Positions 11,242-47,662 are shown, counted from the first letter of the stretch. The stretch is DNA of 64,000 bases from IMGVR_UViG_3300020380_000001:1-64000, one strand, 5' to 3'. Numbers and translations: made by a program. The notes: a model not told the origin generated them from the sequence alone.

Positions 11242-12426
11242 ATGAGTAAGGTTCTTAATGAGAATTGGGGAGTTACCAAGAACGCTTTGCTGGAAGGCCT
11301 TCAGGGTTCTGTTCGCAAGACTACTGATGTAGTACTGGAAAATGCTCGAAAGCAAGCGCTTAGAGAAAGTGCCACAAGTGGTTCAACCGGTACTGGTAAT
11401 ATCGCCACTGTTAACAAAATTATGCTTCCGTTGCTACGCCGCGTTATGCCTAGCACGATTGCAAATGAAATCATGGGTGTTCAGCCTATGACTGGTCCAG
11501 TAGGCCAAATCCATACTCTACGTGTAAACTACGCAGAAGACGGTGCTGGTTTTAAAGCTGGACAAGAAGCGTTTAACCCGTTTGACATCGCGAAAGCGTA
11601 CTCAGGTAACAACGTAGCGAACTCGTCTACGTCACCACTACCTGGTCCAAGTTCAACTGCCTCTATGGAAGGTGAACCTGGTCGCCGTATGTCTGTAAAC
11701 ATCTTGAAAGAGACTGTTGAAGTTAAATCTCGTAAGCTATCTGCGAGCTGGACTTTCGAAGCTGCACAAGATGCTGAAGCTGTTCATGGCATCGACATCG
11801 AAGCAGAAATCATGGAAGCTATTGCGCAAGAAATCACAGTTGAAATCGACCAAGAACTACTTGGCCGCTTACGCAACCTAGCTGGCGCACCTGCACAGAG
11901 CTACGATCAGAACGCTGTTTCTGGTACTGCTACATTCGTAGGTGACGAGCACGCTGCTCTTGCAACTATGATGAACCTTGAAAGTAACTTGATCTCACAA
12001 CGTACACGTCGTGGTGTTGCTAACTTTGCGGTAGTAAGCCCTGTGGCACTAACTATCCTACAGTCTGCGACTACTTCTGCGTTCGCACGTACTACTGAAG
12101 GCAAGTTCGATGCACCTCTTAACACTAAGTTAGTTGGTACTCTGAACAACGCTATGAAGATCTACGTAGATCAGTTTGCGTCTTCTGACGAAGCTGTATT
12201 ACTAGGTTATAAAGGCAACGAGACTGACGCTGGTGCGTTCTACTGTCCTTATATCCCGCTTCAATCAGTTGGTCCAATCATTGATCCTACTACTTTCCAA
12301 CCAGTAGTAAGCTTCATGACTCGTTACGGATACTGTGAGCTGACTAACACAGCTAACTCTTTCGGTAACGCAGGCGACTACTACAGCCGTATCGGTATCA
12401 ACACTTCTAACTTATCATTCTTCTAA
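11242..12426 (+). CDS. gp23: major capsid protein (T4 gp23-like)
   Basis: MGVQPMTGPVGQI, KSRKLSASWTFEAAQD, EITVEIDQE, AGAFYCPYIPL, FMTRYG motifs. Confidence 0.95.
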   Translation: MSKVLNENWGVTKNALLEGLQGSVRKTTDVVLENARKQALRESATSGSTGTGNIATVNKIMLPLLRRVMPSTIANEIMGVQPMTGPVGQIHTLRVNYAEDGAGFKAGQEAFNPFDIAKAYSGNNVANSSTSPLPGPSSTASMEGEPGRRMSVNILKETVEVKSRKLSASWTFEAAQDAEAVHGIDIEAEIMEAIAQEITVEIDQELLGRLRNLAGAPAQSYDQNAVSGTATFVGDEHAALATMMNLESNLISQRTRRGVANFAVVSPVALTILQSATTSAFARTTEGKFDAPLNTKLVGTLNNAMKIYVDQFASSDEAVLLGYKGNETDAGAFYCPYIPLQSVGPIIDPTTFQPVVSFMTRYGYCELTNTANSFGNAGDYYSRIGINTSNLSFF

Positions 12427-12603: not shown

Positions 12604-12981
12604 TTGTGTGTAACACCTGAAAACTATACATGGATTATTACAATGCAGCCTTATGTATATTATGGCTACGGTATTAAACTAAGTGAAGTTACTGAAGAAG
12701 AGTTTGACCAAATAGAAGAGGATGACTTTTTTCAAATTACTTGGTTTAGTGACACTTGCCGTGAGCAAGAATACGGCATTGCATTTATAGACAATGCATA
12801 TCACTCACCATGGGACGAAGACACTACTGAAGATCCTTCCCTGTCTTATGCGGTGGATACTGGTGAAATTGACTCAGCGCGTATGAAGTATTTGCCGGAG
12901 TTACAAAAAGTTCTTGACCATCCGATGGTCAAAAAGTATAATAAGCAGATTAAATTTTACGTTTGTTGTACTGAAGTTTAA
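12604..12981 (+). CDS. hypothetical acidic protein (start probably ATG ~12643)
   Basis: ORF with phage-like composition. Confidence 0.65.
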   Translation: MCVTPENYTWIITMQPYVYYGYGIKLSEVTEEEFDQIEEDDFFQITWFSDTCREQEYGIAFIDNAYHSPWDEDTTEDPSLSYAVDTGEIDSARMKYLPELQKVLDHPMVKKYNKQIKFYVCCTEV

Positions 12982-12991
12982 CAGTAAACGT

Positions 12992-13062
12992 GGCCCTGAT
13001 TTGGCATAAGTAGCCGGTCTCTAAAACCGCGAAAGTGGGTTCGAATCCCGCCGGGGTCACCA
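12992..13062 (+). tRNA. atypical tRNA with CUA anticodon (amber suppressor / Pyl-like)
   Basis: Acceptor GGCCCTG/CGGGGTC + A + encoded CCA; anticodon arm CGGT-CTCTAAA-ACCG; T-arm GTGGG-TTCGAAT-CCCGC; short D-arm, no U8. Confidence 0.85.
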
Positions 13063-13084: not shown

Positions 13085-13213
13085 ATGGTAATTCCTGTTG
13101 TCAATATTTATGTCAACAACTCGTCGTTCATATGCTCGTTTGGCGGACTCTGTCAATATACGACATCATCTGGCGGCTGTCATTACCCTGGTCCATGCAA
13201 GTTTAAAGTATAA
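13085..13213 (+). CDS. 42-aa Cys-rich peptide (not in ORF track)
   Basis: AAGGA RBS; MVIPVVNIYVNNSSFICSFGGLCQYTTSSGGCHYPGPCKFKV. Confidence 0.55.
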   Translation: MVIPVVNIYVNNSSFICSFGGLCQYTTSSGGCHYPGPCKFKV

Positions 13214-13228
13214 TTAAGGAGAAACGTC

Positions 13229-13606
13229 ATGCGTTAGAACACTCAAAAACCATCACTTAAAATGTGGCGCTGGGGCAACGATAAGTTCGCCACCGGCTAT
13301 AAAATATTCACTCTATTCCATTCTAAAACACTCGGTATCGACTTGTATCTATTCAGGTATCCCGAGGGTTCATTCATTCCTAAACATAAAGATCCTAAAA
13401 CAAACGGTCCTACTACTCGTATAAACTTAGAACTCCGTAAAGCTCAGCAAGGCGGTGTTTTCAAGTGTAAGCGTAAATGGTCGTTGTTTGATAGATTGCA
13501 CGTCTTTAGAGCAGATAGAGACTATCACTCTGTGTCTAAAATAGAGAAAGGCTCTCGATGGGTTCTGTCTTTGGGGATAGCAAACGTGTTCAAAAAACCA
13601 CAGTAA
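13229..13606 (+). CDS. 2OG-Fe(II) oxygenase-like protein; strong-RBS start at 13229 has an in-frame TAG at codon 3 (track start 13262)
   Basis: HKD...H...R motif (IPKHKDP, YHSVSKI, SRWVL); TAAGGAG 7 nt before ATG-CGT-TAG, in frame with ATG 13262. Confidence 0.75.
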
Positions 13607-13710
13607 TAAAAAGGTACCTTATTCAATATAAATGTCCAGTAATTATGTAGGTTGCGCAGCTTTTGGATGAAAGATTGCTAAATAGACATATATAAAGAAT
13701 AAGGTACCCT

Positions 13711-14479: not shown

Positions 14480-17400
14480 ATGTCCTATGAATTTAATATC
14501 AATGGCGGCACTCGTTTTGTACTAACTAACGGTGAGTCATCAGGGATTGAAAACATTCGGTTAGAAGGGTCTGTTATTATAACAGAAGACTTAACTGTGC
14601 TAGGCAATAACACAGTTTTGGAAACATCAACCGTAACAATTGAAGATACAATTATCACTATAGGGCGCGGCACTGCTGAGCTAGACCCAAGTGATGCGTT
14701 TTTGTCTGGCGGCTTGATTGTAGAAAGACCGGCAGGTGAGAATCACAAAGGACTTTGGTACACACCTTCGGCGGGTAGCTTTATATTCGGCGAAACAGTA
14801 ACAGACAGTGAAGACCAAATTACTGAACTAAGCCCGGACGCCTACACTGACGTTTCTATGGGCCATTTAACTGTGCATTATAACGCTGACGGCGCTGCTG
14901 ATGCATATATTGGCGACCCGTCGTCTAAGTTTACTTCGTCAGGCACAGTACAGTTTGGTAAGCTTTCTAACGCTGAGTCAACGAACGTACAAGGCGAAAA
15001 CGCGTCTTTTGACAATCCCAAAGACGTCCGTGTTAAAACGGGCGGGGCTGTGCGTGAAGAAGTTCGCGTAGAAGACTCTAGCTTTGGTGAATGGCGCGTT
15101 CGTACATCGTCACTCGTAGGCGCAGCTGGCTCAGAAATCGTTTATGATCAAGACCTTTACATGGGCAACGGCGAGTTCACTTACAACGGTGACACCGTAC
15201 TTACTATGGGTTCTGGCGACTATGTTGTTTCTATTAATGACTTGCAAGGCGTAGTTGAGTTTAGGTTATTTGACTTACTAGATGTCGAAGGCGATCACCA
15301 AGAGTTTACGGGCGCGCCAAGGGAAGACGGCAAGTACTTGAAATTCAACGCTAGTGAAGGTGTATGGCTACCGTCCTTTATTACGCAAATAAACGAGATT
15401 GAAAACGTTAACGCTAGTGAAATTGAAGGCCATGTGTTGCAATATCGTCTAGACTCAGCAGACGGCGTGTATCGTTGGATGGAGTCTACAGTCGCTATGC
15501 CTGAGAAACTATTCCAGTTATTGGATGTAGACATGGCAACTGAGACAGTAGCAGAACCCGGCCAGTCTCTTATATGGTTTGAAGAAGACGAAGTATCCGG
15601 TGCAGGCTTCTGGCGTCCGTCATTTATCCCTAGTATACATTCAATCTTGGATGTAGAAAGCTCGCTACCAGACGCTGGAGACGAGGGTAAAGCCTTAATC
15701 TGGAATAACACAACAGGCAAGTGGGTTTTAAGCGCTACGAGCTTTGTAGAGGTGTTAGACGACCTTGCTGACGTTAACGGAGTACTTAACCTTGACGATA
15801 AGGCGTTTCTTAAGTATGACTTGGACAATTCGCAATGGGTGCCTGGATTTGTAGACGACATTGGTGAAATTACTAATGTTAGGGAAATGACAAACGGTGC
15901 TACCCAAGACAACAAGATTCTTAAGTACAACTTCAGTGACCAAGTCTGGGAAGCCGGTATAATTGACGACTTAGCTGAAATCGGTAACGTTGATATTGCT
16001 GATTACGGCACAGTAGAAGAAGGCCATACAATAAAGTGGGACGTGGTAAACGCTCGCTGGGTTACTGGACCTGCATTGTCTACGTTATTTGATGTAACTG
16101 ATGTAAAAGAAACTGAAGGCTCCATGGCCGAAGGACGCTTCCTTGTATGGCGCGCAAACGGTGCAGATGGTCCTGGTTGGTATCAGTCTGACATGGGCCA
16201 AGTGCAAGTTCTGGATGATTTGAATGACGTTATTATCGCTCAAGGCGACTTGTCTGACGGAAAAGTCCTGCGATACAATAGTTCTTTATCCCAGTGGGAA
16301 CCGGGTATAATACAGCAAATTACTGAGATCGGCGATGTTACTATTGACTATGATTCGCAGTCAATTAACGGCATTAAAGATCAACACGTATTGAAGTGGA
16401 ACGGTAGTCGCTTTGTAAATGGATTTGTTAGTAAAATTTCAGACATTGAAAATGTTGACGCAGTTGACAACCCGACTGACGGTGACTTCTTACGTTATGT
16501 CGAGAGTACAGGACGCTGGTCTAACAGTCCGATCAACTCAATCGACGAAATAGTAAACGTTGAATTAGGCGGAATCGCTGACGGCAAAGTACTGGAGTGG
16601 GATTCGTCTGCGAACAGCGGGCAAGGTGCGTTCGTCCCTAGTGCAGGAACCCGTGTCGAGTATTTCGGTGATTTAATTGATGTCACTGTCCCGGAAGACC
16701 CTACCCAAATAACTGTTGGTTCTGCACTACGTTTTAACGGTAGTAAGTGGACACCGTACGATTATTCATTCCCGGAGGCTATCGGTGATATGAATAATGT
16801 TATTATCACTGGCCCTACTACTGGTGATGCTCTTTTATTCAACGGCACTGACTGGGTAAACGGCAACATACCTCATCCTACTCGCTTAGAACAGCTACGC
16901 GATGACGTTGATTTAAACACTCCGCTCAATGGCGAAGTGCTAATGTACGATGGTACTAATTGGATTAACTCGACGGCAGTTGTGGTTGATGTGTTAAACG
17001 ACTTAGATGACGTTGAACTAACTGCGCTAAGTGATGATCAGTTCTTGCGTTATGACATTGCCGAAGCGCGATGGAAAAACCAGTCTGTAAAAATTCCTGT
17101 TAACATATTAGATCTTGAAGACGTTAATCCTAACTACAGATTACCGGACGATAACCCTAATTACGAAGAACCCCAAAACGGTGAAGTACTTCGATTTAAC
17201 GGTGTATTTTGGCAAGGCGTAACACTGCCTGTTTACGATCAACTAGATGATTTGCTGGATGTGAGTATTAGTGGTGCAGCCGTTGATCACGTGTTGTATT
17301 ACAATGGCGCTGGCTGGCAAAACCGCAAGCTAGACTTCATATCCAATATGGGTGATTTACTTGACGTTAGCGCTGATTCGCCTACTAATGGATCCATATT

Positions 17401-20400
17401 AATTTATGACGGCCCGACCTCTGAATGGGTTGCAAGCAGTGTAGGCGATTTAAACATCGTAATTGACGATTTAGATGATGTCGACACGCTTAGTGTACAA
17501 GCAGGTCACGTGCTAACTGCTGTGCCTGACGGTGACGGTTTCTCATGGACTAACCAAGCCCCGGCTTATAGTACTTTAGGTTCACTAGATGACGTTAATG
17601 ATGGCTCACGCGCACTAGGCAAATACTTGCGTTATGATGGCACTCGCTGGGTTGCTAGTGAGCTAGTTACTAGTGAAATCTTGGACTCGTTGATTGAAGA
17701 GTTATCACTTGATGAGCTAGGCGATGTCACTATAGACAATACCCTTGACACCGGCGACATGCTTGTTCATGTTGAAGGCGTATGGGTTAATCAAAACGTA
17801 GGTGAAGCTTTCGGTCAATATGCAACCATTGGTGACTTAGGTAACGTAACCGCTGATACACCGCTTGCTGGTGACACTATTGTCTATGACGATGTAACTG
17901 GCAAATACGTGTCTGTTAACTTGGTTCAAGTAGTTAAAACTGGTCTAAACCTTGCAGAACTAGCAGGAACTGAAGACGGCGAACAATATGTCTGGGACGC
18001 AACTGGTGCCGAGTGGGTAGTTAAACACTTAGGTGACCCAACAGGCGCACCTGACGCTGGTAAAGTCCTTACTTGGGATGGCACAAAATGGACCACTCAA
18101 GATTTGCCTGAAGACAAGTTCATCAAACTATTGAGTGAATTAGACGACGTTCAAACCGACGATTTGGCTGCCATACAAAACAACCAAATACTACGCTGGA
18201 ATGCTGCTAGTCAGTTCTGGGAAAACGTAGATTGGCCTAGTATTTCACTGCACATGCTTGAAGACGTTAATTTCGTGACACCTGCTGTAAATGATTTAGT
18301 TGTTTACGACGGTACCGAATGGGTTAATTTAGATTTACCGGTAATTGCAGGTAACGTCCTTGAACTGGATAACTTGTCTAACGTAAACGCTTCTGTTCCT
18401 AGCGATCACCAAGTATTAGCGTATAACACCGCTGATGGCGAGTGGCAAAGTACTGATATTGCTACAGTTGCAAATAACAACTTGAATTTGTCTGACTTGG
18501 CAGATGTGTTCGATGGTGTTTCTCCGAGTGGGGAGACAAAATTCTTGGCTTGGGACTTTGACAATTCTCGATGGAGTGTTAGTTCAGTATCGTTAAACGC
18601 TTTCGCAATTAACGAGTTAAGCAACGTTACAATATCGTCGCCGACGTCTGGTGATTTCCTTAGATTTGACGGCGCAGAATGGATAAATGATAGCGTAGTT
18701 ATCCCAACTACATTAGATAGCTTGTTAGATGTTAGTACAACAAATCCGTCAGACGGCGCGTTCTTAACATACGAAGAACAGTCAAATGAATGGGTTGGTA
18801 GAAACTTTCTAATAGTTGAGTCATTAAGTGATTTAACAGACGTTAATACAACTGGTGTACAAGCAGGTGACACACTAATTTACCAAGGCGGCGCATGGGT
18901 TCCTATCCAAGTTCCTCCAGTAACACTTGAGTCACGTGACTTGACTGATGTGTCGGATACGGCTGCTACTGACGGACAAGTTCTATTATGGAACGAATCT
19001 GCAGGGCAATGGGAACCAAACGACATGCCGGATCCGTTTATTCCTGCGGTCTTAAACGACTTAAGTAATGTTAACGTTCCTGCACCGTCCGCTGATGACG
19101 TGCTTGTTTTTGACAGTGTTAGTGGTGAATGGATAGCCGCTGCTTTTAACACGTTAGTTAACATAGAACTCGGCCAGCTTACTAATGTGTCGTTGTCAAA
19201 CGTTTCTGATTCACACGTACTAGCGTATAACTCAGCAACTGGTGATTGGGAGAACGCGACCTTAGGCTCACTAGGTATTGGCGTGAGTGACTTAGGTGAT
19301 GTTTCCGGTACAGCGAATGCCGACAATCGTTTCCTGATTTATAACGACACTACTGGCCAATGGGATATAACTGTATTCCAAACAATTAGTATGATTGAGG
19401 ATGTCAATGCAGCTGGCGCAACAAGCGGTGATGCCCTTGTGTGGAACGGCACCCAATTTGTTCCTGGCTCTCCGGGCAACGTAAATGCCGAATCACTAAA
19501 TGGACAACCTGCGTCTGCATATTTGCGCTCAGATGAAGCTGATGTTGGTGTGGCTCTAGAACTTAGTGACGTAAGACCTCTTGAGTTCTCTAGCACATCA
19601 GAGGTAAGAATTGGCGCTGCCGCAGCACCGCGACTTGGTATATACGCCCCGCGTGTTAGTGTGCTGGCCGATGGTATATCGTTGGATTATAGTCCGCTTG
19701 ACACAGCTGGTGTCAAACTTGTACCCGACACGGCGCCTGCACTCACTGAAGCTGGCTTCATGTGGTGTGATTCAAGTGATAACTCGTTAATGTTTTATAA
19801 CGGTTCTGAACAGCTTAACATTTCAAATATAGCGACTCAGAATTATATCGTTAATGATACTGACGGTGAGCTTACTAGCCTAACTATTACGGCAGCCGAA
19901 GCGAAAATGTATGTAGAGGGTACGACTAACGAGAATACACGTTTCACGTTCTCTGACAAAGCCACAGACAAAGCCGCACTTGTTGACATGGGCGCAAGCA
20001 TACTAACTGATATCGGCGGCACTAACGGTAACGCTGGCGCTCAGACGGTAGCAGTCGCTGGTAAAACAGTGTTGTATAGTGACGCTGGTGATGTATACAG
20101 ACGTAACGGATCCGGTACTGATCGTTTAGCGACTATCTCTGACATTCAGGCTGAAATCATAACAGCTAACGCAAGTTATACGACAGTAAGTGGTGACTCA
20201 GTAGCGCTAAGTGAAGGTAATAGTCTAGTTCGCTATGCTATTCCGGATAATACAACAAGTGTGATGAACATCTCTGGTATTGATCAATTAGAAACTGGTA
20301 ACTCAGTAGTTATAGCGGCAACGGCAAATACTGTTATATCTAATTGGGGTACTAACTCTAGATTGAGAATGGAGGTTACAGGCTTAACGGGCATGTACGT

Positions 20401-20518
20401 AAACGGCGTTTATACGTCAGGTACTACACATATTATTGACTTAAGTGTTACGCCTAACATTACACTTTACTTCTACGAAGACGGATCCAATAAGTACTTT
20501 ATTTGTCAAGCGTCCTAG
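14480..20518 (+). CDS. giant acidic repeat fibre/whisker-like virion protein (2012 aa)
   Basis: About 37 imperfect LxDLxDV...G..LxW/Y...W repeats; N-terminal DLTVLG..T.....VTIED motif; NAESLNG..ASAYLRSD fibre motif; CTAAATA at 14442. Confidence 0.75.
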   Translation: MSYEFNINGGTRFVLTNGESSGIENIRLEGSVIITEDLTVLGNNTVLETSTVTIEDTIITIGRGTAELDPSDAFLSGGLIVERPAGENHKGLWYTPSAGSFIFGETVTDSEDQITELSPDAYTDVSMGHLTVHYNADGAADAYIGDPSSKFTSSGTVQFGKLSNAESTNVQGENASFDNPKDVRVKTGGAVREEVRVEDSSFGEWRVRTSSLVGAAGSEIVYDQDLYMGNGEFTYNGDTVLTMGSGDYVVSINDLQGVVEFRLFDLLDVEGDHQEFTGAPREDGKYLKFNASEGVWLPSFITQINEIENVNASEIEGHVLQYRLDSADGVYRWMESTVAMPEKLFQLLDVDMATETVAEPGQSLIWFEEDEVSGAGFWRPSFIPSIHSILDVESSLPDAGDEGKALIWNNTTGKWVLSATSFVEVLDDLADVNGVLNLDDKAFLKYDLDNSQWVPGFVDDIGEITNVREMTNGATQDNKILKYNFSDQVWEAGIIDDLAEIGNVDIADYGTVEEGHTIKWDVVNARWVTGPALSTLFDVTDVKETEGSMAEGRFLVWRANGADGPGWYQSDMGQVQVLDDLNDVIIAQGDLSDGKVLRYNSSLSQWEPGIIQQITEIGDVTIDYDSQSINGIKDQHVLKWNGSRFVNGFVSKISDIENVDAVDNPTDGDFLRYVESTGRWSNSPINSIDEIVNVELGGIADGKVLEWDSSANSGQGAFVPSAGTRVEYFGDLIDVTVPEDPTQITVGSALRFNGSKWTPYDYSFPEAIGDMNNVIITGPTTGDALLFNGTDWVNGNIPHPTRLEQLRDDVDLNTPLNGEVLMYDGTNWINSTAVVVDVLNDLDDVELTALSDDQFLRYDIAEARWKNQSVKIPVNILDLEDVNPNYRLPDDNPNYEEPQNGEVLRFNGVFWQGVTLPVYDQLDDLLDVSISGAAVDHVLYYNGAGWQNRKLDFISNMGDLLDVSADSPTNGSILIYDGPTSEWVASSVGDLNIVIDDLDDVDTLSVQAGHVLTAVPDGDGFSWTNQAPAYSTLGSLDDVNDGSRALGKYLRYDGTRWVASELVTSEILDSLIEELSLDELGDVTIDNTLDTGDMLVHVEGVWVNQNVGEAFGQYATIGDLGNVTADTPLAGDTIVYDDVTGKYVSVNLVQVVKTGLNLAELAGTEDGEQYVWDATGAEWVVKHLGDPTGAPDAGKVLTWDGTKWTTQDLPEDKFIKLLSELDDVQTDDLAAIQNNQILRWNAASQFWENVDWPSISLHMLEDVNFVTPAVNDLVVYDGTEWVNLDLPVIAGNVLELDNLSNVNASVPSDHQVLAYNTADGEWQSTDIATVANNNLNLSDLADVFDGVSPSGETKFLAWDFDNSRWSVSSVSLNAFAINELSNVTISSPTSGDFLRFDGAEWINDSVVIPTTLDSLLDVSTTNPSDGAFLTYEEQSNEWVGRNFLIVESLSDLTDVNTTGVQAGDTLIYQGGAWVPIQVPPVTLESRDLTDVSDTAATDGQVLLWNESAGQWEPNDMPDPFIPAVLNDLSNVNVPAPSADDVLVFDSVSGEWIAAAFNTLVNIELGQLTNVSLSNVSDSHVLAYNSATGDWENATLGSLGIGVSDLGDVSGTANADNRFLIYNDTTGQWDITVFQTISMIEDVNAAGATSGDALVWNGTQFVPGSPGNVNAESLNGQPASAYLRSDEADVGVALELSDVRPLEFSSTSEVRIGAAAAPRLGIYAPRVSVLADGISLDYSPLDTAGVKLVPDTAPALTEAGFMWCDSSDNSLMFYNGSEQLNISNIATQNYIVNDTDGELTSLTITAAEAKMYVEGTTNENTRFTFSDKATDKAALVDMGASILTDIGGTNGNAGAQTVAVAGKTVLYSDAGDVYRRNGSGTDRLATISDIQAEIITANASYTTVSGDSVALSEGNSLVRYAIPDNTTSVMNISGIDQLETGNSVVIAATANTVISNWGTNSRLRMEVTGLTGMYVNGVYTSGTTHIIDLSVTPNITLYFYEDGSNKYFICQAS

Positions 20519-46379: not shown

Positions 46380-46460
46380 TACAAGGCAGCTATACGCTGC
46401 CTTTCTTCAATCCACCTCCCTGTTAGAAAAAAGTGAAAACTTTTCTAACAAAAATTATCC

Positions 46461-46490
46461 TTGACAACTAAATAAAGACAGTGCTACAAT
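46461..46490 (+). promoter_or_regulatory. nested early (TTGACA-N18-TACAAT) and late (CTAAATA) promoters for ssb
   Basis: TTGACA 46461-46466, CTAAATA 46468-46474, TACAAT 46485-46490. Confidence 0.7.
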
Positions 46491-46521
46491 GAACTTGCTC
46501 ATTATGGCACTAAATGAAAAT

Positions 46522-46618
46522 GTAAATTTTGAATCGTAAATTTTGAATCGTAAATTTTGTTTCGTAAATTAGATAGCCGTAAATTATAACAATAAAAATA
46601 AATTAAGAGTATCGTAAA
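46522..46618 (+). repeat. GTAAATT tandem repeats in the ssb leader (14-15 nt period)
   Basis: GTAAATT at 46522, 46536, 46550, 46564, 46579; GTAAAAT at 46614 overlapping the ATG. Confidence 0.85.
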
Positions 46619-47662
46619 ATGCCGGATATTAATGAAATTCGTGCACGTCTACAACGTGCTGCCGCTCAAAAAGACAACCAAGGTTCATCACGTGGACCAA
46701 GCCCACTTTATCGTCACTGGGATGCTCCTGACGATTCCCGTATTGAAGTAAGATTCCTTCCTGATGCAAATGCCGACAACGTCTATTTCTGGCGTGAAAA
46801 GCAAATGATCAAGCTTGAGTTTTCTTCGGTGCTTGGCCAACCGGACTTTAACAAGGGTAAACCTTTTATCGTACAGGTTCCTTGTGTTGAAATGTACAAT
46901 GACGGCAGATCTTGCCCTGTTAGTCGTGAAGTATCATCGTGGTTTAACACTGATATGGATAGCCTAGCACGCAAGTACTGGAAGAAACGTTCTTATATTA
47001 TGCAGGGTTTTGTTTTACAAGATCCAACTAATGAAGAACAGCCGCCTGAGAACCCTATCAGACAATTCAATATTAACTCGCAAATATTCAAGAATGTGCG
47101 CGAGGGACTACTTGACCCTGATATGCTTCACACGCCAACTGACTATAACAACGGTACAAACTTTGTTATAAAGAAAACTAAGAACGGCCAATACGCTGAT
47201 TACACCACGTCAAACTGGTCTCGTAACGAGTCTGCGCTTAGTCAAGAGCACATGGATGCAATTCAGAACTACGAGCTTAAAGATCTGAATACATTGCTTC
47301 CTAAGGTTCCGTCTGACGAGGACTTGTTAATCATTAAAGAAATGTTTGAAGCAAGTGTAAGTGGCGAACCGTATGACCCTTCTCGTTGGGGTGAACACTT
47401 CCGTCCTTATGGATTGAAAACTGAGTCGAACAACTCAGAACAAGGTACTAAACAGGCTCCGTCTACGCCAGCTGCCCCTGCTCAGTCAGCTAAAACAGAC
47501 GATGCTCCTCCGTTTAAACCTTCTACTGCTGAACCACGCCAAGAGTCACGCCCAGCACCTGCTGCAAGCGCTACGCCGGCACCAGCTGCCCCGGCTGCAC
47601 CGTCTAGTTCTGACTCTAGCGTAAATGATATTCTGGCTAAGATCCGTTCTCGCCAAAACTAA
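46619..47662 (+). CDS. gp32: single-stranded DNA-binding protein (T4 gp32-like)
   Basis: RFLPD, VPC..MY....CPV, YWKKRSY...FV..DP, FD...G.NF..K, flexible Pro/Ala tail. Confidence 0.85.
   Translation: MPDINEIRARLQRAAAQKDNQGSSRGPSPLYRHWDAPDDSRIEVRFLPDANADNVYFWREKQMIKLEFSSVLGQPDFNKGKPFIVQVPCVEMYNDGRSCPVSREVSSWFNTDMDSLARKYWKKRSYIMQGFVLQDPTNEEQPPENPIRQFNINSQIFKNVREGLLDPDMLHTPTDYNNGTNFVIKKTKNGQYADYTTSNWSRNESALSQEHMDAIQNYELKDLNTLLPKVPSDEDLLIIKEMFEASVSGEPYDPSRWGEHFRPYGLKTESNNSEQGTKQAPSTPAAPAQSAKTDDAPPFKPSTAEPRQESRPAPAASATPAPAAPAAPSSSDSSVNDILAKIRSRQN

Follow-up and report, generated by a model that had tools for sequence, protein, structure and literature searches.

How is a gene translated when its reading frame is closed by a stop codon almost directly after its start? 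In a stretch of 64,000 nucleotides from a large marine phage (IMGVR_UViG_3300020380_000001:1-64000, hereafter the window), a small gene for a 2OG-Fe(II)-oxygenase-like protein carries an in-frame TAG as its third codon, and a tRNA-like gene with anticodon CUA, potentially able to read TAG, lies next to it. An initial annotation of the sequence alone proposed that full-length expression may depend on this adjacent suppressor tRNA, with a Met-Arg minigene allowing reinitiation at a downstream ATG, a recent nonsense mutation or a sequencing error as alternatives. In this study I examine the locus and its relatives by comparative sequence analysis. The description given in the initial annotation is exact, and the comparative data support its interpretation and argue against its alternatives, although the evidence for decoding of the TAG is indirect throughout.

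Results

The window is part of a jumbo myophage, of which the gp23-type major capsid protein (11242-12426) is 67% identical to that of Pseudomonas phage PA5oct and 61% to Rak2/121Q-type phages. No GenBank phage matches it at the DNA level, but near-identical contigs of 306-310 kb come from marine metagenomes, and many marine runs hold the region. Downstream of the capsid gene, on the + strand, a consensus scan shows a sigma-70-like promoter consensus at 12914-12942 (TTGACC-17-TATAAT, 11 of 12), about 50 nt upstream of the tRNA-like gene at 12992-13062. This is a candidate start of one transcription unit comprising the tRNA, a small ORF and the oxygenase, as no terminator-like site was found between 12992 and 13606; a metatranscriptome contig spanning 12615-13599 is in line with this, though it is weak evidence. 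The small ORF (13085-13213, + strand) encodes 42 amino acids, is Cys-rich and has no PHROG match. It is specific to this lineage and not part of the conserved cassette; in other lineages the tRNA lies 20-40 nt from the gate. It is followed by the Shine-Dalgarno (SD) sequence TAAGGAG (13215-13221), a spacer of 7 nt, the ATG at 13229-13231, CGT at 13232-13234 and the TAG at 13235-13237, all on the + strand. The post-gate reading frame (13238-13606, + strand) consists of 122 sense codons and the TAA at 13604-13606. The first eight of these codons (N T Q K P S L K) precede an in-frame ATG at 13262-13264, which gene callers use as the start, even though no SD-like purine run precedes it.

The protein encoded after the TAG is predicted to be a minimal double-stranded beta-helix (DSBH). 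Its match to PF13640 is weak (E=0.0024, 19.2 bits against a gathering score of 27), whereas its match to PHROG 13746, of unknown function, is strong (E=2e-34). However, the residues H50-x-D52, H97 and R107, numbered from the codon after TAG, are invariant in 24-26 sequences, as expected for the iron triad and the basic residue of the 2OG-Fe(II) oxygenase superfamily. The AF2 model is all-beta with a pLDDT of 88.6. The best Foldseek matches are AspH, P4H, PHD2 and cupins at TM 0.5-0.6, VIA-align gives a Z of about 10 to cupins, and neighbours in the ESM Atlas are named 2OG-Fe(II) oxygenase. These fold matches, including those in AFDB Swiss-Prot, are generic for cupin/DSBH proteins, so that no substrate can be inferred from them, and a sequence-profile search of the PDB found nothing significant.

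The TAG is not an assembly error. Six independent assemblies representing two strains are identical from 13202 to 13293, TAG included, while the same strains differ by 4-13% in the flanking genes: at 17 of 129 nt in the small ORF, at 17 of 369 nt in the oxygenase and at 17 of 378 nt in the upstream gene. Contigs from two DNA runs and two metatranscriptome runs of other studies show no variant in the leader. The 17 nucleotide differences in the oxygenase cause only 2 amino acid differences, so this gene is under purifying selection; in the small ORF, 17 nucleotide differences cause 3 amino acid differences. The tRNA-like gene, likewise under purifying selection, differs between the strains at 1 of 71 positions, and that change turns G-U into A-U in the acceptor stem.

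In order to discern whether the early stop is a recent mutation, I collected relatives together with their DNA from IMG/VR, metagenomes, GenBank phages, a representative search of 1.8 billion proteins and bacterial genomes. This gave 32 distinguishable lineages of one subfamily, 39-61% identical to the window protein and characterised by the motifs W[KR]WG.D, S[FY]IPKHKDP, FRAD..YH and R..LSFG, among which are the cultured Vibrio phages nt-1 and CZ01 and Xanthomonas phage XaC1. Every one of these genes has an in-frame stop 5-13 codons upstream of the W[KR]WG motif, preceded by an SD-like motif and an ATG plus 0-6 codons. The stop is TAG in 30 lineages and TAA in 2 (numbered L040 and L043 among the lineages collected here), even though TAG makes up only 6 of 64 stops in the window and 37 of 283 in nt-1. 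More distant homologues (about 35-45% identity, motif SSIPPH.D), found in phages RP12, FLC9, Vp_R1, Phabio, D6 and Lu11 and among many proteins from the representative search, start normally 1-5 residues before the W motif and have no such gate. In a maximum-likelihood tree the gated genes form one clade (support 92/97) with an internal length of about 9 amino acid substitutions per site, the ungated genes lie outside it, and the two TAA cases are sisters nested within it. So the gate arose once, together with a short N-terminal extension, and has since been kept as a stop; no sense codon was seen there in any lineage, tRNA-bearing relatives included, and it changed to TAA only once. This is selection for the stop itself rather than tolerance of a nonsense mutation, and a pseudogene or recent mutation is excluded.

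Alternatively, ATG-CGT-TAG could be a two-codon upstream ORF, after which ribosomes restart at the ATG at 13262, with the tRNA-like gene being unrelated or only modulatory. About half of the lineages indeed have an ATG or TTG 5-9 codons after the gate, and some tRNA-independent initiation cannot be excluded there or in the window. However, at least 14 lineages have no ATG, GTG or TTG between the stop and the invariant W-G-D residues, with TTA, CTC and the like at the position of the ATG at 13262, so that reinitiation cannot be the general mechanism. The residues between the stop and the core are moreover conserved as amino acids, in the pattern x-K-x-K-P-[ST]-L-[KR]-[LM], and a mini-ORF would accept any stop, in contrast with the observed prevalence of TAG over a background of 9-13%. 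I therefore consider this explanation unlikely, although the two TAA lineages, which have such an ATG and no CUA tRNA nearby, may work this way. In 27 of 29 TAG gates checked the next base is A, as in the window, a context that probably favours amber suppression. Folding of the leader mRNA (13195-13320) gave no structure beyond shuffled controls (z = -0.8), hence a structure-stimulated readthrough signal is not supported.

The tRNA-like gene at 12992-13059, with an encoded CCA at 13060-13062, lies 166 nt before the ATG at 13229. It has a 7-bp acceptor stem (GGCCCUG/CGGGGUC), a 3-bp D-stem directly abutting a weak anticodon stem of 3-4 bp with a C-C mismatch on top, the loop CUCUAAA, a canonical T-arm (GUGGG-UUCGAAU-CCCGC) and discriminator A73, and the cloverleaf is its minimum free energy structure. 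However, ARAGORN at default settings calls no tRNA anywhere in the window and reports this gene, with anticodon cta, only when thresholds are lowered to 80%, while the Rfam tRNA model (RF00005) gives 26.2 bits, below its gathering score of 29. Among relatives only L055 (41.7 bits) and L027 (29.5 bits) pass the Rfam threshold, and L016 and L068 are called by ARAGORN at default; most of the others are not found at E<=1.

As standard finders miss these genes, I wrote two scanners, one requiring 7/7 acceptor pairs, a T-stem, CCA and U-CUA-R, and one requiring 5/5 T-stem pairs, CCA and the loop motif. A more permissive version (6/7 acceptor pairs, 4/5 T-stem pairs, no CCA) produced mostly noise. 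A CUA tRNA-like gene is present on the same strand as the oxygenase, within 2 kb, in 25 of 32 lineages. It lies 20-170 nt upstream in the window, XaC1, L006, L008, L015, L016, L020, L021, L041, L042, L046, L045, L049, L055, L059 and Allohahella, 0.7 kb upstream in L023, 2 kb upstream in L019, and immediately downstream in nt-1, CZ01, L022, L027, L036, L037 and L038. In the sequence available for the other 7 lineages no such gene was found; three or four of these are short contigs, two are the TAA lineages, for which no UUA tRNA was found either, and L007 had none within +-10 kb. None lies near the six ungated homologues in RP12, FLC9, Vp_R1, Phabio, D6 and Lu11.

These RNAs share the loop [CU]-U-C-U-A-A-[AC], a GG in the 5' linker, a canonical T-arm, mostly A73 and an encoded CCA. 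UCUAA is invariant in the 17 aligned sequences, whereas one relative, L068, has C33. As MAFFT left the 5' acceptor strands out of register because the D-regions differ in length, pair statistics were taken from anchored parsing and from RNAalifold on the 3' two thirds. Acceptor, T- and anticodon stems differ in sequence in every lineage while staying complementary, with covariation across 19 sequences, but complementarity of the acceptor was a criterion of my own scanner for 17 of them and is not independent evidence for those. Two architectures are apparent. The window, L045, L049, L055 and L068 form a cloverleaf, whereas about two thirds of the family (about 12 of 19 relatives) lack a D-stem and instead have an extended anticodon arm, in which the 22-26 region pairs with the variable region. 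This extension shows clear covariation, with 7-11 of 17 sequences changed on both sides at each of four pairs. Most have a C-A or A-C mismatch at positions 31-39.

Is the tRNA dedicated to this gene? I scanned both strands of the complete 247,511-bp genome of nt-1, the only complete genome analysed in this way, for an SD, an ATG, up to 8 codons, any stop and at least 90 open codons. There was exactly one hit, the oxygenase with TAG, and none with TAA or TGA. Same-frame ORF pairs separated by a single TAG occur at the background frequency and are simply adjacent genes. In the window the oxygenase is the only TAG case, the one other case being a TAA followed by an ordinary start 8 codons later, and the CUA gene is the only tRNA-like gene found. 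Genome-wide reassignment of TAG to a sense codon, as in code-15 phages, could be suggested by the presence of a suppressor tRNA, by TAG being the rarest stop and by gene callers having translated three relatives with TAG as Q. However, the window is densely coding under the standard code, including an ORF of 2012 amino acids, and several genes, the 2012-aa one among them, end in TAG, which makes reassignment very improbable. The few genuine TAG terminators in the window are followed by another in-frame stop within 4-16 codons, and some readthrough there would therefore cost little.

Discussion

The observations are best explained, with fairly high though not complete confidence, by a two-part translational cassette consisting of a phage-encoded amber suppressor tRNA and one client gene, interrupted by UAG at codon 3 (codon 2-8 in relatives). 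In this model ribosomes start at the strong SD-ATG at 13229 and, with the phage tRNA(CUA) in the A site, insert an amino acid at UAG and make the full oxygenase, including the conserved N-terminal K-P-S/T-L-K/R segment, while without it host RF1 releases a di- or tripeptide at almost no cost, a sensible reason for a gate at the very 5' end. Oxygenase output would thus be set by the activity of the co-encoded tRNA relative to RF1, a natural AND gate needing both mRNA and working tRNA. That the RNA is processed, charged by a host synthetase and used by the ribosome is inferred, and D-stem-less tRNAs with weak anticodon stems have apparently not been shown to work in bacterial translation. As acceptor stems are not conserved, identity probably rests on the anticodon and on base 73; Gln or Lys, which amber suppressors usually seem to accept, are my guesses for the inserted residue. 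Since both parts appear to be co-transcribed, the variable sensed is probably tRNA maturation, charging or integrity, or RF1 activity, and not transcription, and my preferred reading is that the gate ties synthesis of the oxygenase to the supply or integrity of phage tRNA. The gene frequently lies inside phage tRNA clusters, so the enzyme may act on the translation apparatus, but this hint proves nothing and its substrate is unknown.

Alternatively, the early UAG may be read at a low level by near-cognate host tRNAs, with expression reporting host RF1 activity and the RNA serving as a processing signal, a decoy for anticodon nucleases or the substrate of the oxygenase. UAG is the only RF1-specific stop, the tRNA-likes are structurally aberrant, and the gene frequently lies inside phage tRNA clusters, while in phage D6 the ungated homologue lies between RlmN-like and RtcB genes, which hints at a link with RNA metabolism. 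However, the only invariant stretch of the RNA outside the T-arm is the anticodon loop with CUA, the encoded CCA, 7-bp acceptor stem, T-loop and conserved GG are what a decoding tRNA needs, and no CUA RNA was found in the available sequence where the gate is TAA. A decoy or processing signal would not need the anticodon matching the neighbour's gate, and I regard this possibility as doubtful. A T-box-like pairing of the leader UAG with the anticodon was rejected, as the leader is only about 15 nt and the stop is in frame in every lineage, and so was an amber-initiator tRNA, as positions 1-72 are paired, the anticodon stem lacks a run of three G-C pairs and an SD-ATG precedes the gate. More speculatively, and rather unlikely on present evidence, the cassette may be a sensor of tRNA integrity or RF1 activity in which the oxygenase, made only while phage tRNAs are matured, charged and left uncut, hydroxylates EF-Tu, RF1, a ribosomal protein or a tRNA, closing a feedback loop that helps the phage when hosts attack or deplete tRNAs. 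These 65-68-nt RNAs would then be the first D-armless tRNAs shown to work on bacterial ribosomes.

Phage suppressor tRNAs, genome-wide TAG recoding and early-stop regulation are all known, but I found no description of a conserved single-gene amber gate physically linked to its own tRNA in standard-code phages, in a literature search that did not cover subscription journals. The tRNA is missed by ARAGORN, tRNAscan and Rfam in XaC1 and nt-1, the nt-1 and CZ01 records annotate only a truncated ORF, and the XaC1 paper lists eight tRNAs, none a suppressor, and guesses that the oxygenase is a DNA-repair enzyme (PMC11273794). The jumbo phages XacN1 and RsoM2USA, of standard-code hosts, also carry a tRNA with anticodon CUA; for XacN1 the authors read through all 18 amber stops and could not identify any target gene (PMC5852040), and RsoM2USA is similar (PMC8504454). 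Neither has a detectable homologue of this oxygenase subfamily. The present cassette could give an answer, for one phage group, to what such tRNAs read; its gate lies at the 5' end of the ORF, where read-through of annotated stops would miss it. In gut phages with TAG-to-Gln recoding, such as crAss-like and Lak phages (bioRxiv 10.1101/2021.08.26.457843; PMC10879173), a phage suppressor tRNA also decodes in-frame TAG in a standard-code host, and a role in regulating translation has been proposed, but there dozens of late genes carry many in-frame TAGs, whereas here a single gene carries a single TAG and the tRNA is physically linked to it.

In pyrrolysine and selenocysteine decoding, a dedicated and structurally unusual tRNA likewise reads an in-frame stop in a few particular genes and is often encoded near them, and ARAGORN labels the present tRNAs 'Pyl' because of their anticodon. 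However, 2-9 residues separate the gate from the P-S/T-L motif, so no special residue seems to be needed, the T-loop and the GG are canonical, unlike in tRNA-Pyl, and no dedicated synthetase, biosynthesis genes or recoding element were seen nearby, though without a specific search for PylS or pylBCD. The cassette thus suggests that gene-specific stop-codon decoding by a dedicated tRNA exists outside these systems and can be a purely regulatory device. In prfB, an early in-frame stop read by only one release factor also makes expression depend on competition between termination and recoding, but there the event is a +1 frameshift at UGA and the product is the release factor itself. Minigenes and start-stop upstream ORFs, such as the lambda bar minigenes, resemble the literal ATG-TAG found in nt-1, L022, L037, L039, L041 and L047, but are apparently not continuous with a conserved protein and show no preference for TAG and no linked tRNA. 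D-armless mitochondrial tRNAs, for example mt tRNA-Ser(AGY), also lack a D-stem, as do about two thirds of the RNAs described here, but the latter are phage-encoded, would act in bacteria and keep the GG of the D-loop and the canonical T-loop. The logic appears to be the same as that of the synthetic AND gate built from the supD amber suppressor tRNA and an amber-containing T7 RNA polymerase gene (Anderson, Voigt and Arkin 2007), in which output also needs both the mRNA and a suppressor tRNA. That device is engineered with its two inputs on separate promoters, while in the phage cassette both parts are natural, adjacent and probably co-transcribed, so that the second input is more likely tRNA maturation, charging or integrity, or RF1 activity.

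In the window, a 42-codon Cys-rich ORF (13085-13213, + strand) lies between the tRNA-like gene and the predicted oxygenase gene, and as it shows 17 nt but only 3 aa differences between strains, it is a real small gene; it has no family match and is absent from the cassette in other lineages. Just after the oxygenase stop (13599-13676), a metatranscriptome contig of the sister strain replaces 76 nt with 416 other letters, a strain-level indel. Further downstream, at 14480-20518 (+ strand), I observed a 2012-aa ORF made of dozens of degenerate ~30-residue repeats (L.DV...G..L.Y......W). This ORF ends in TAG followed by A, with a TAA four codons later, so that suppression would add only five residues.

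Public gene calls for three relatives (proteins P0002, P0003 and P0005, from loci L059, L058 and L060, respectively) show Q at the gate (the early in-frame stop), because the short contigs were translated with TAG as Gln, whereas the DNA has TAG. Database proteins of this family therefore carry either a false Q or a truncated N-terminus. In the relative L022 (1491-1545), the gate reads ATG-TAG, but one G is also lacking in the TGGGG run of the W-G codons, which shifts the frame; this is either an assembly error in a homopolymer or a decaying copy. The sister lineages L040 and L043 show a different pattern: in both (L040:857-1231 and L043:2486-2869) the gate is TAA instead of TAG, an ATG is located three codons before the W motif, and no CUA tRNA is found nearby, while downstream (L040:1437-1525 and L043:3781-3869) lies an odd 86-nt tRNA-like gene with anticodon UCU, no D-arm and a long variable region.

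Of 185,579 bacterial species representatives, only the genome of Allohahella sp. A8 holds the gated subfamily. Its chromosome (NZ_CP172312.1) has two copies of the cassette of tRNA(CUA) and TAG-gated oxygenase, at about 770.9-774.2 kb and 823.3-826.6 kb, 52 kb apart and with different flanks, which may be the ends of an integrated or co-assembled large phage. In Pseudomonas phage D6 (19.6-22.9 kb), the ungated homologue of the oxygenase sits between an RlmN-like rRNA/tRNA methyltransferase gene and RtcB RNA ligase, a hint that the enzyme family is connected with RNA repair or modification. In Vibrio phage nt-1, the tRNA nucleotidyltransferase (CCA-adding enzyme; 146453-147555, minus strand; 46453-47555 of the piece L083) is annotated as two adjacent CDSs, separated by 26 nt and out of frame, which could be a frameshift, a sequencing error or a programmed event.

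Unusual phage tRNAs are also encountered next to the cassette. Phage nt-1 has two 77-nt tRNAs with Leu anticodons (UAA, CAA) but no long variable arm (L028:1292-1451), and the annotated tRNA-Ser of Xanthomonas phage XaC1 (L009:2667-2754) has anticodon ACU, with A at the wobble position. The canonical-looking tRNA(CUA) at L068:8013-8087, 2 kb upstream of the gated gene of the phage of lineage L019, has C instead of the near-universal U at position 33. About two thirds of the CUA tRNAs are 65-67 nt long and have no D-stem, as in XaC1 (L009:2884-2953) and in the relatives L006 (2878-2946), L008 (2880-2948), L016 (1394-1463), L027 (1820-1888), L041 (454-523) and others. In these, the 22-26 region pairs with the variable region to extend the anticodon arm, with covariation, while the GG and the T-loop are kept. 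This would be a D-armless tRNA class in phages of bacteria.
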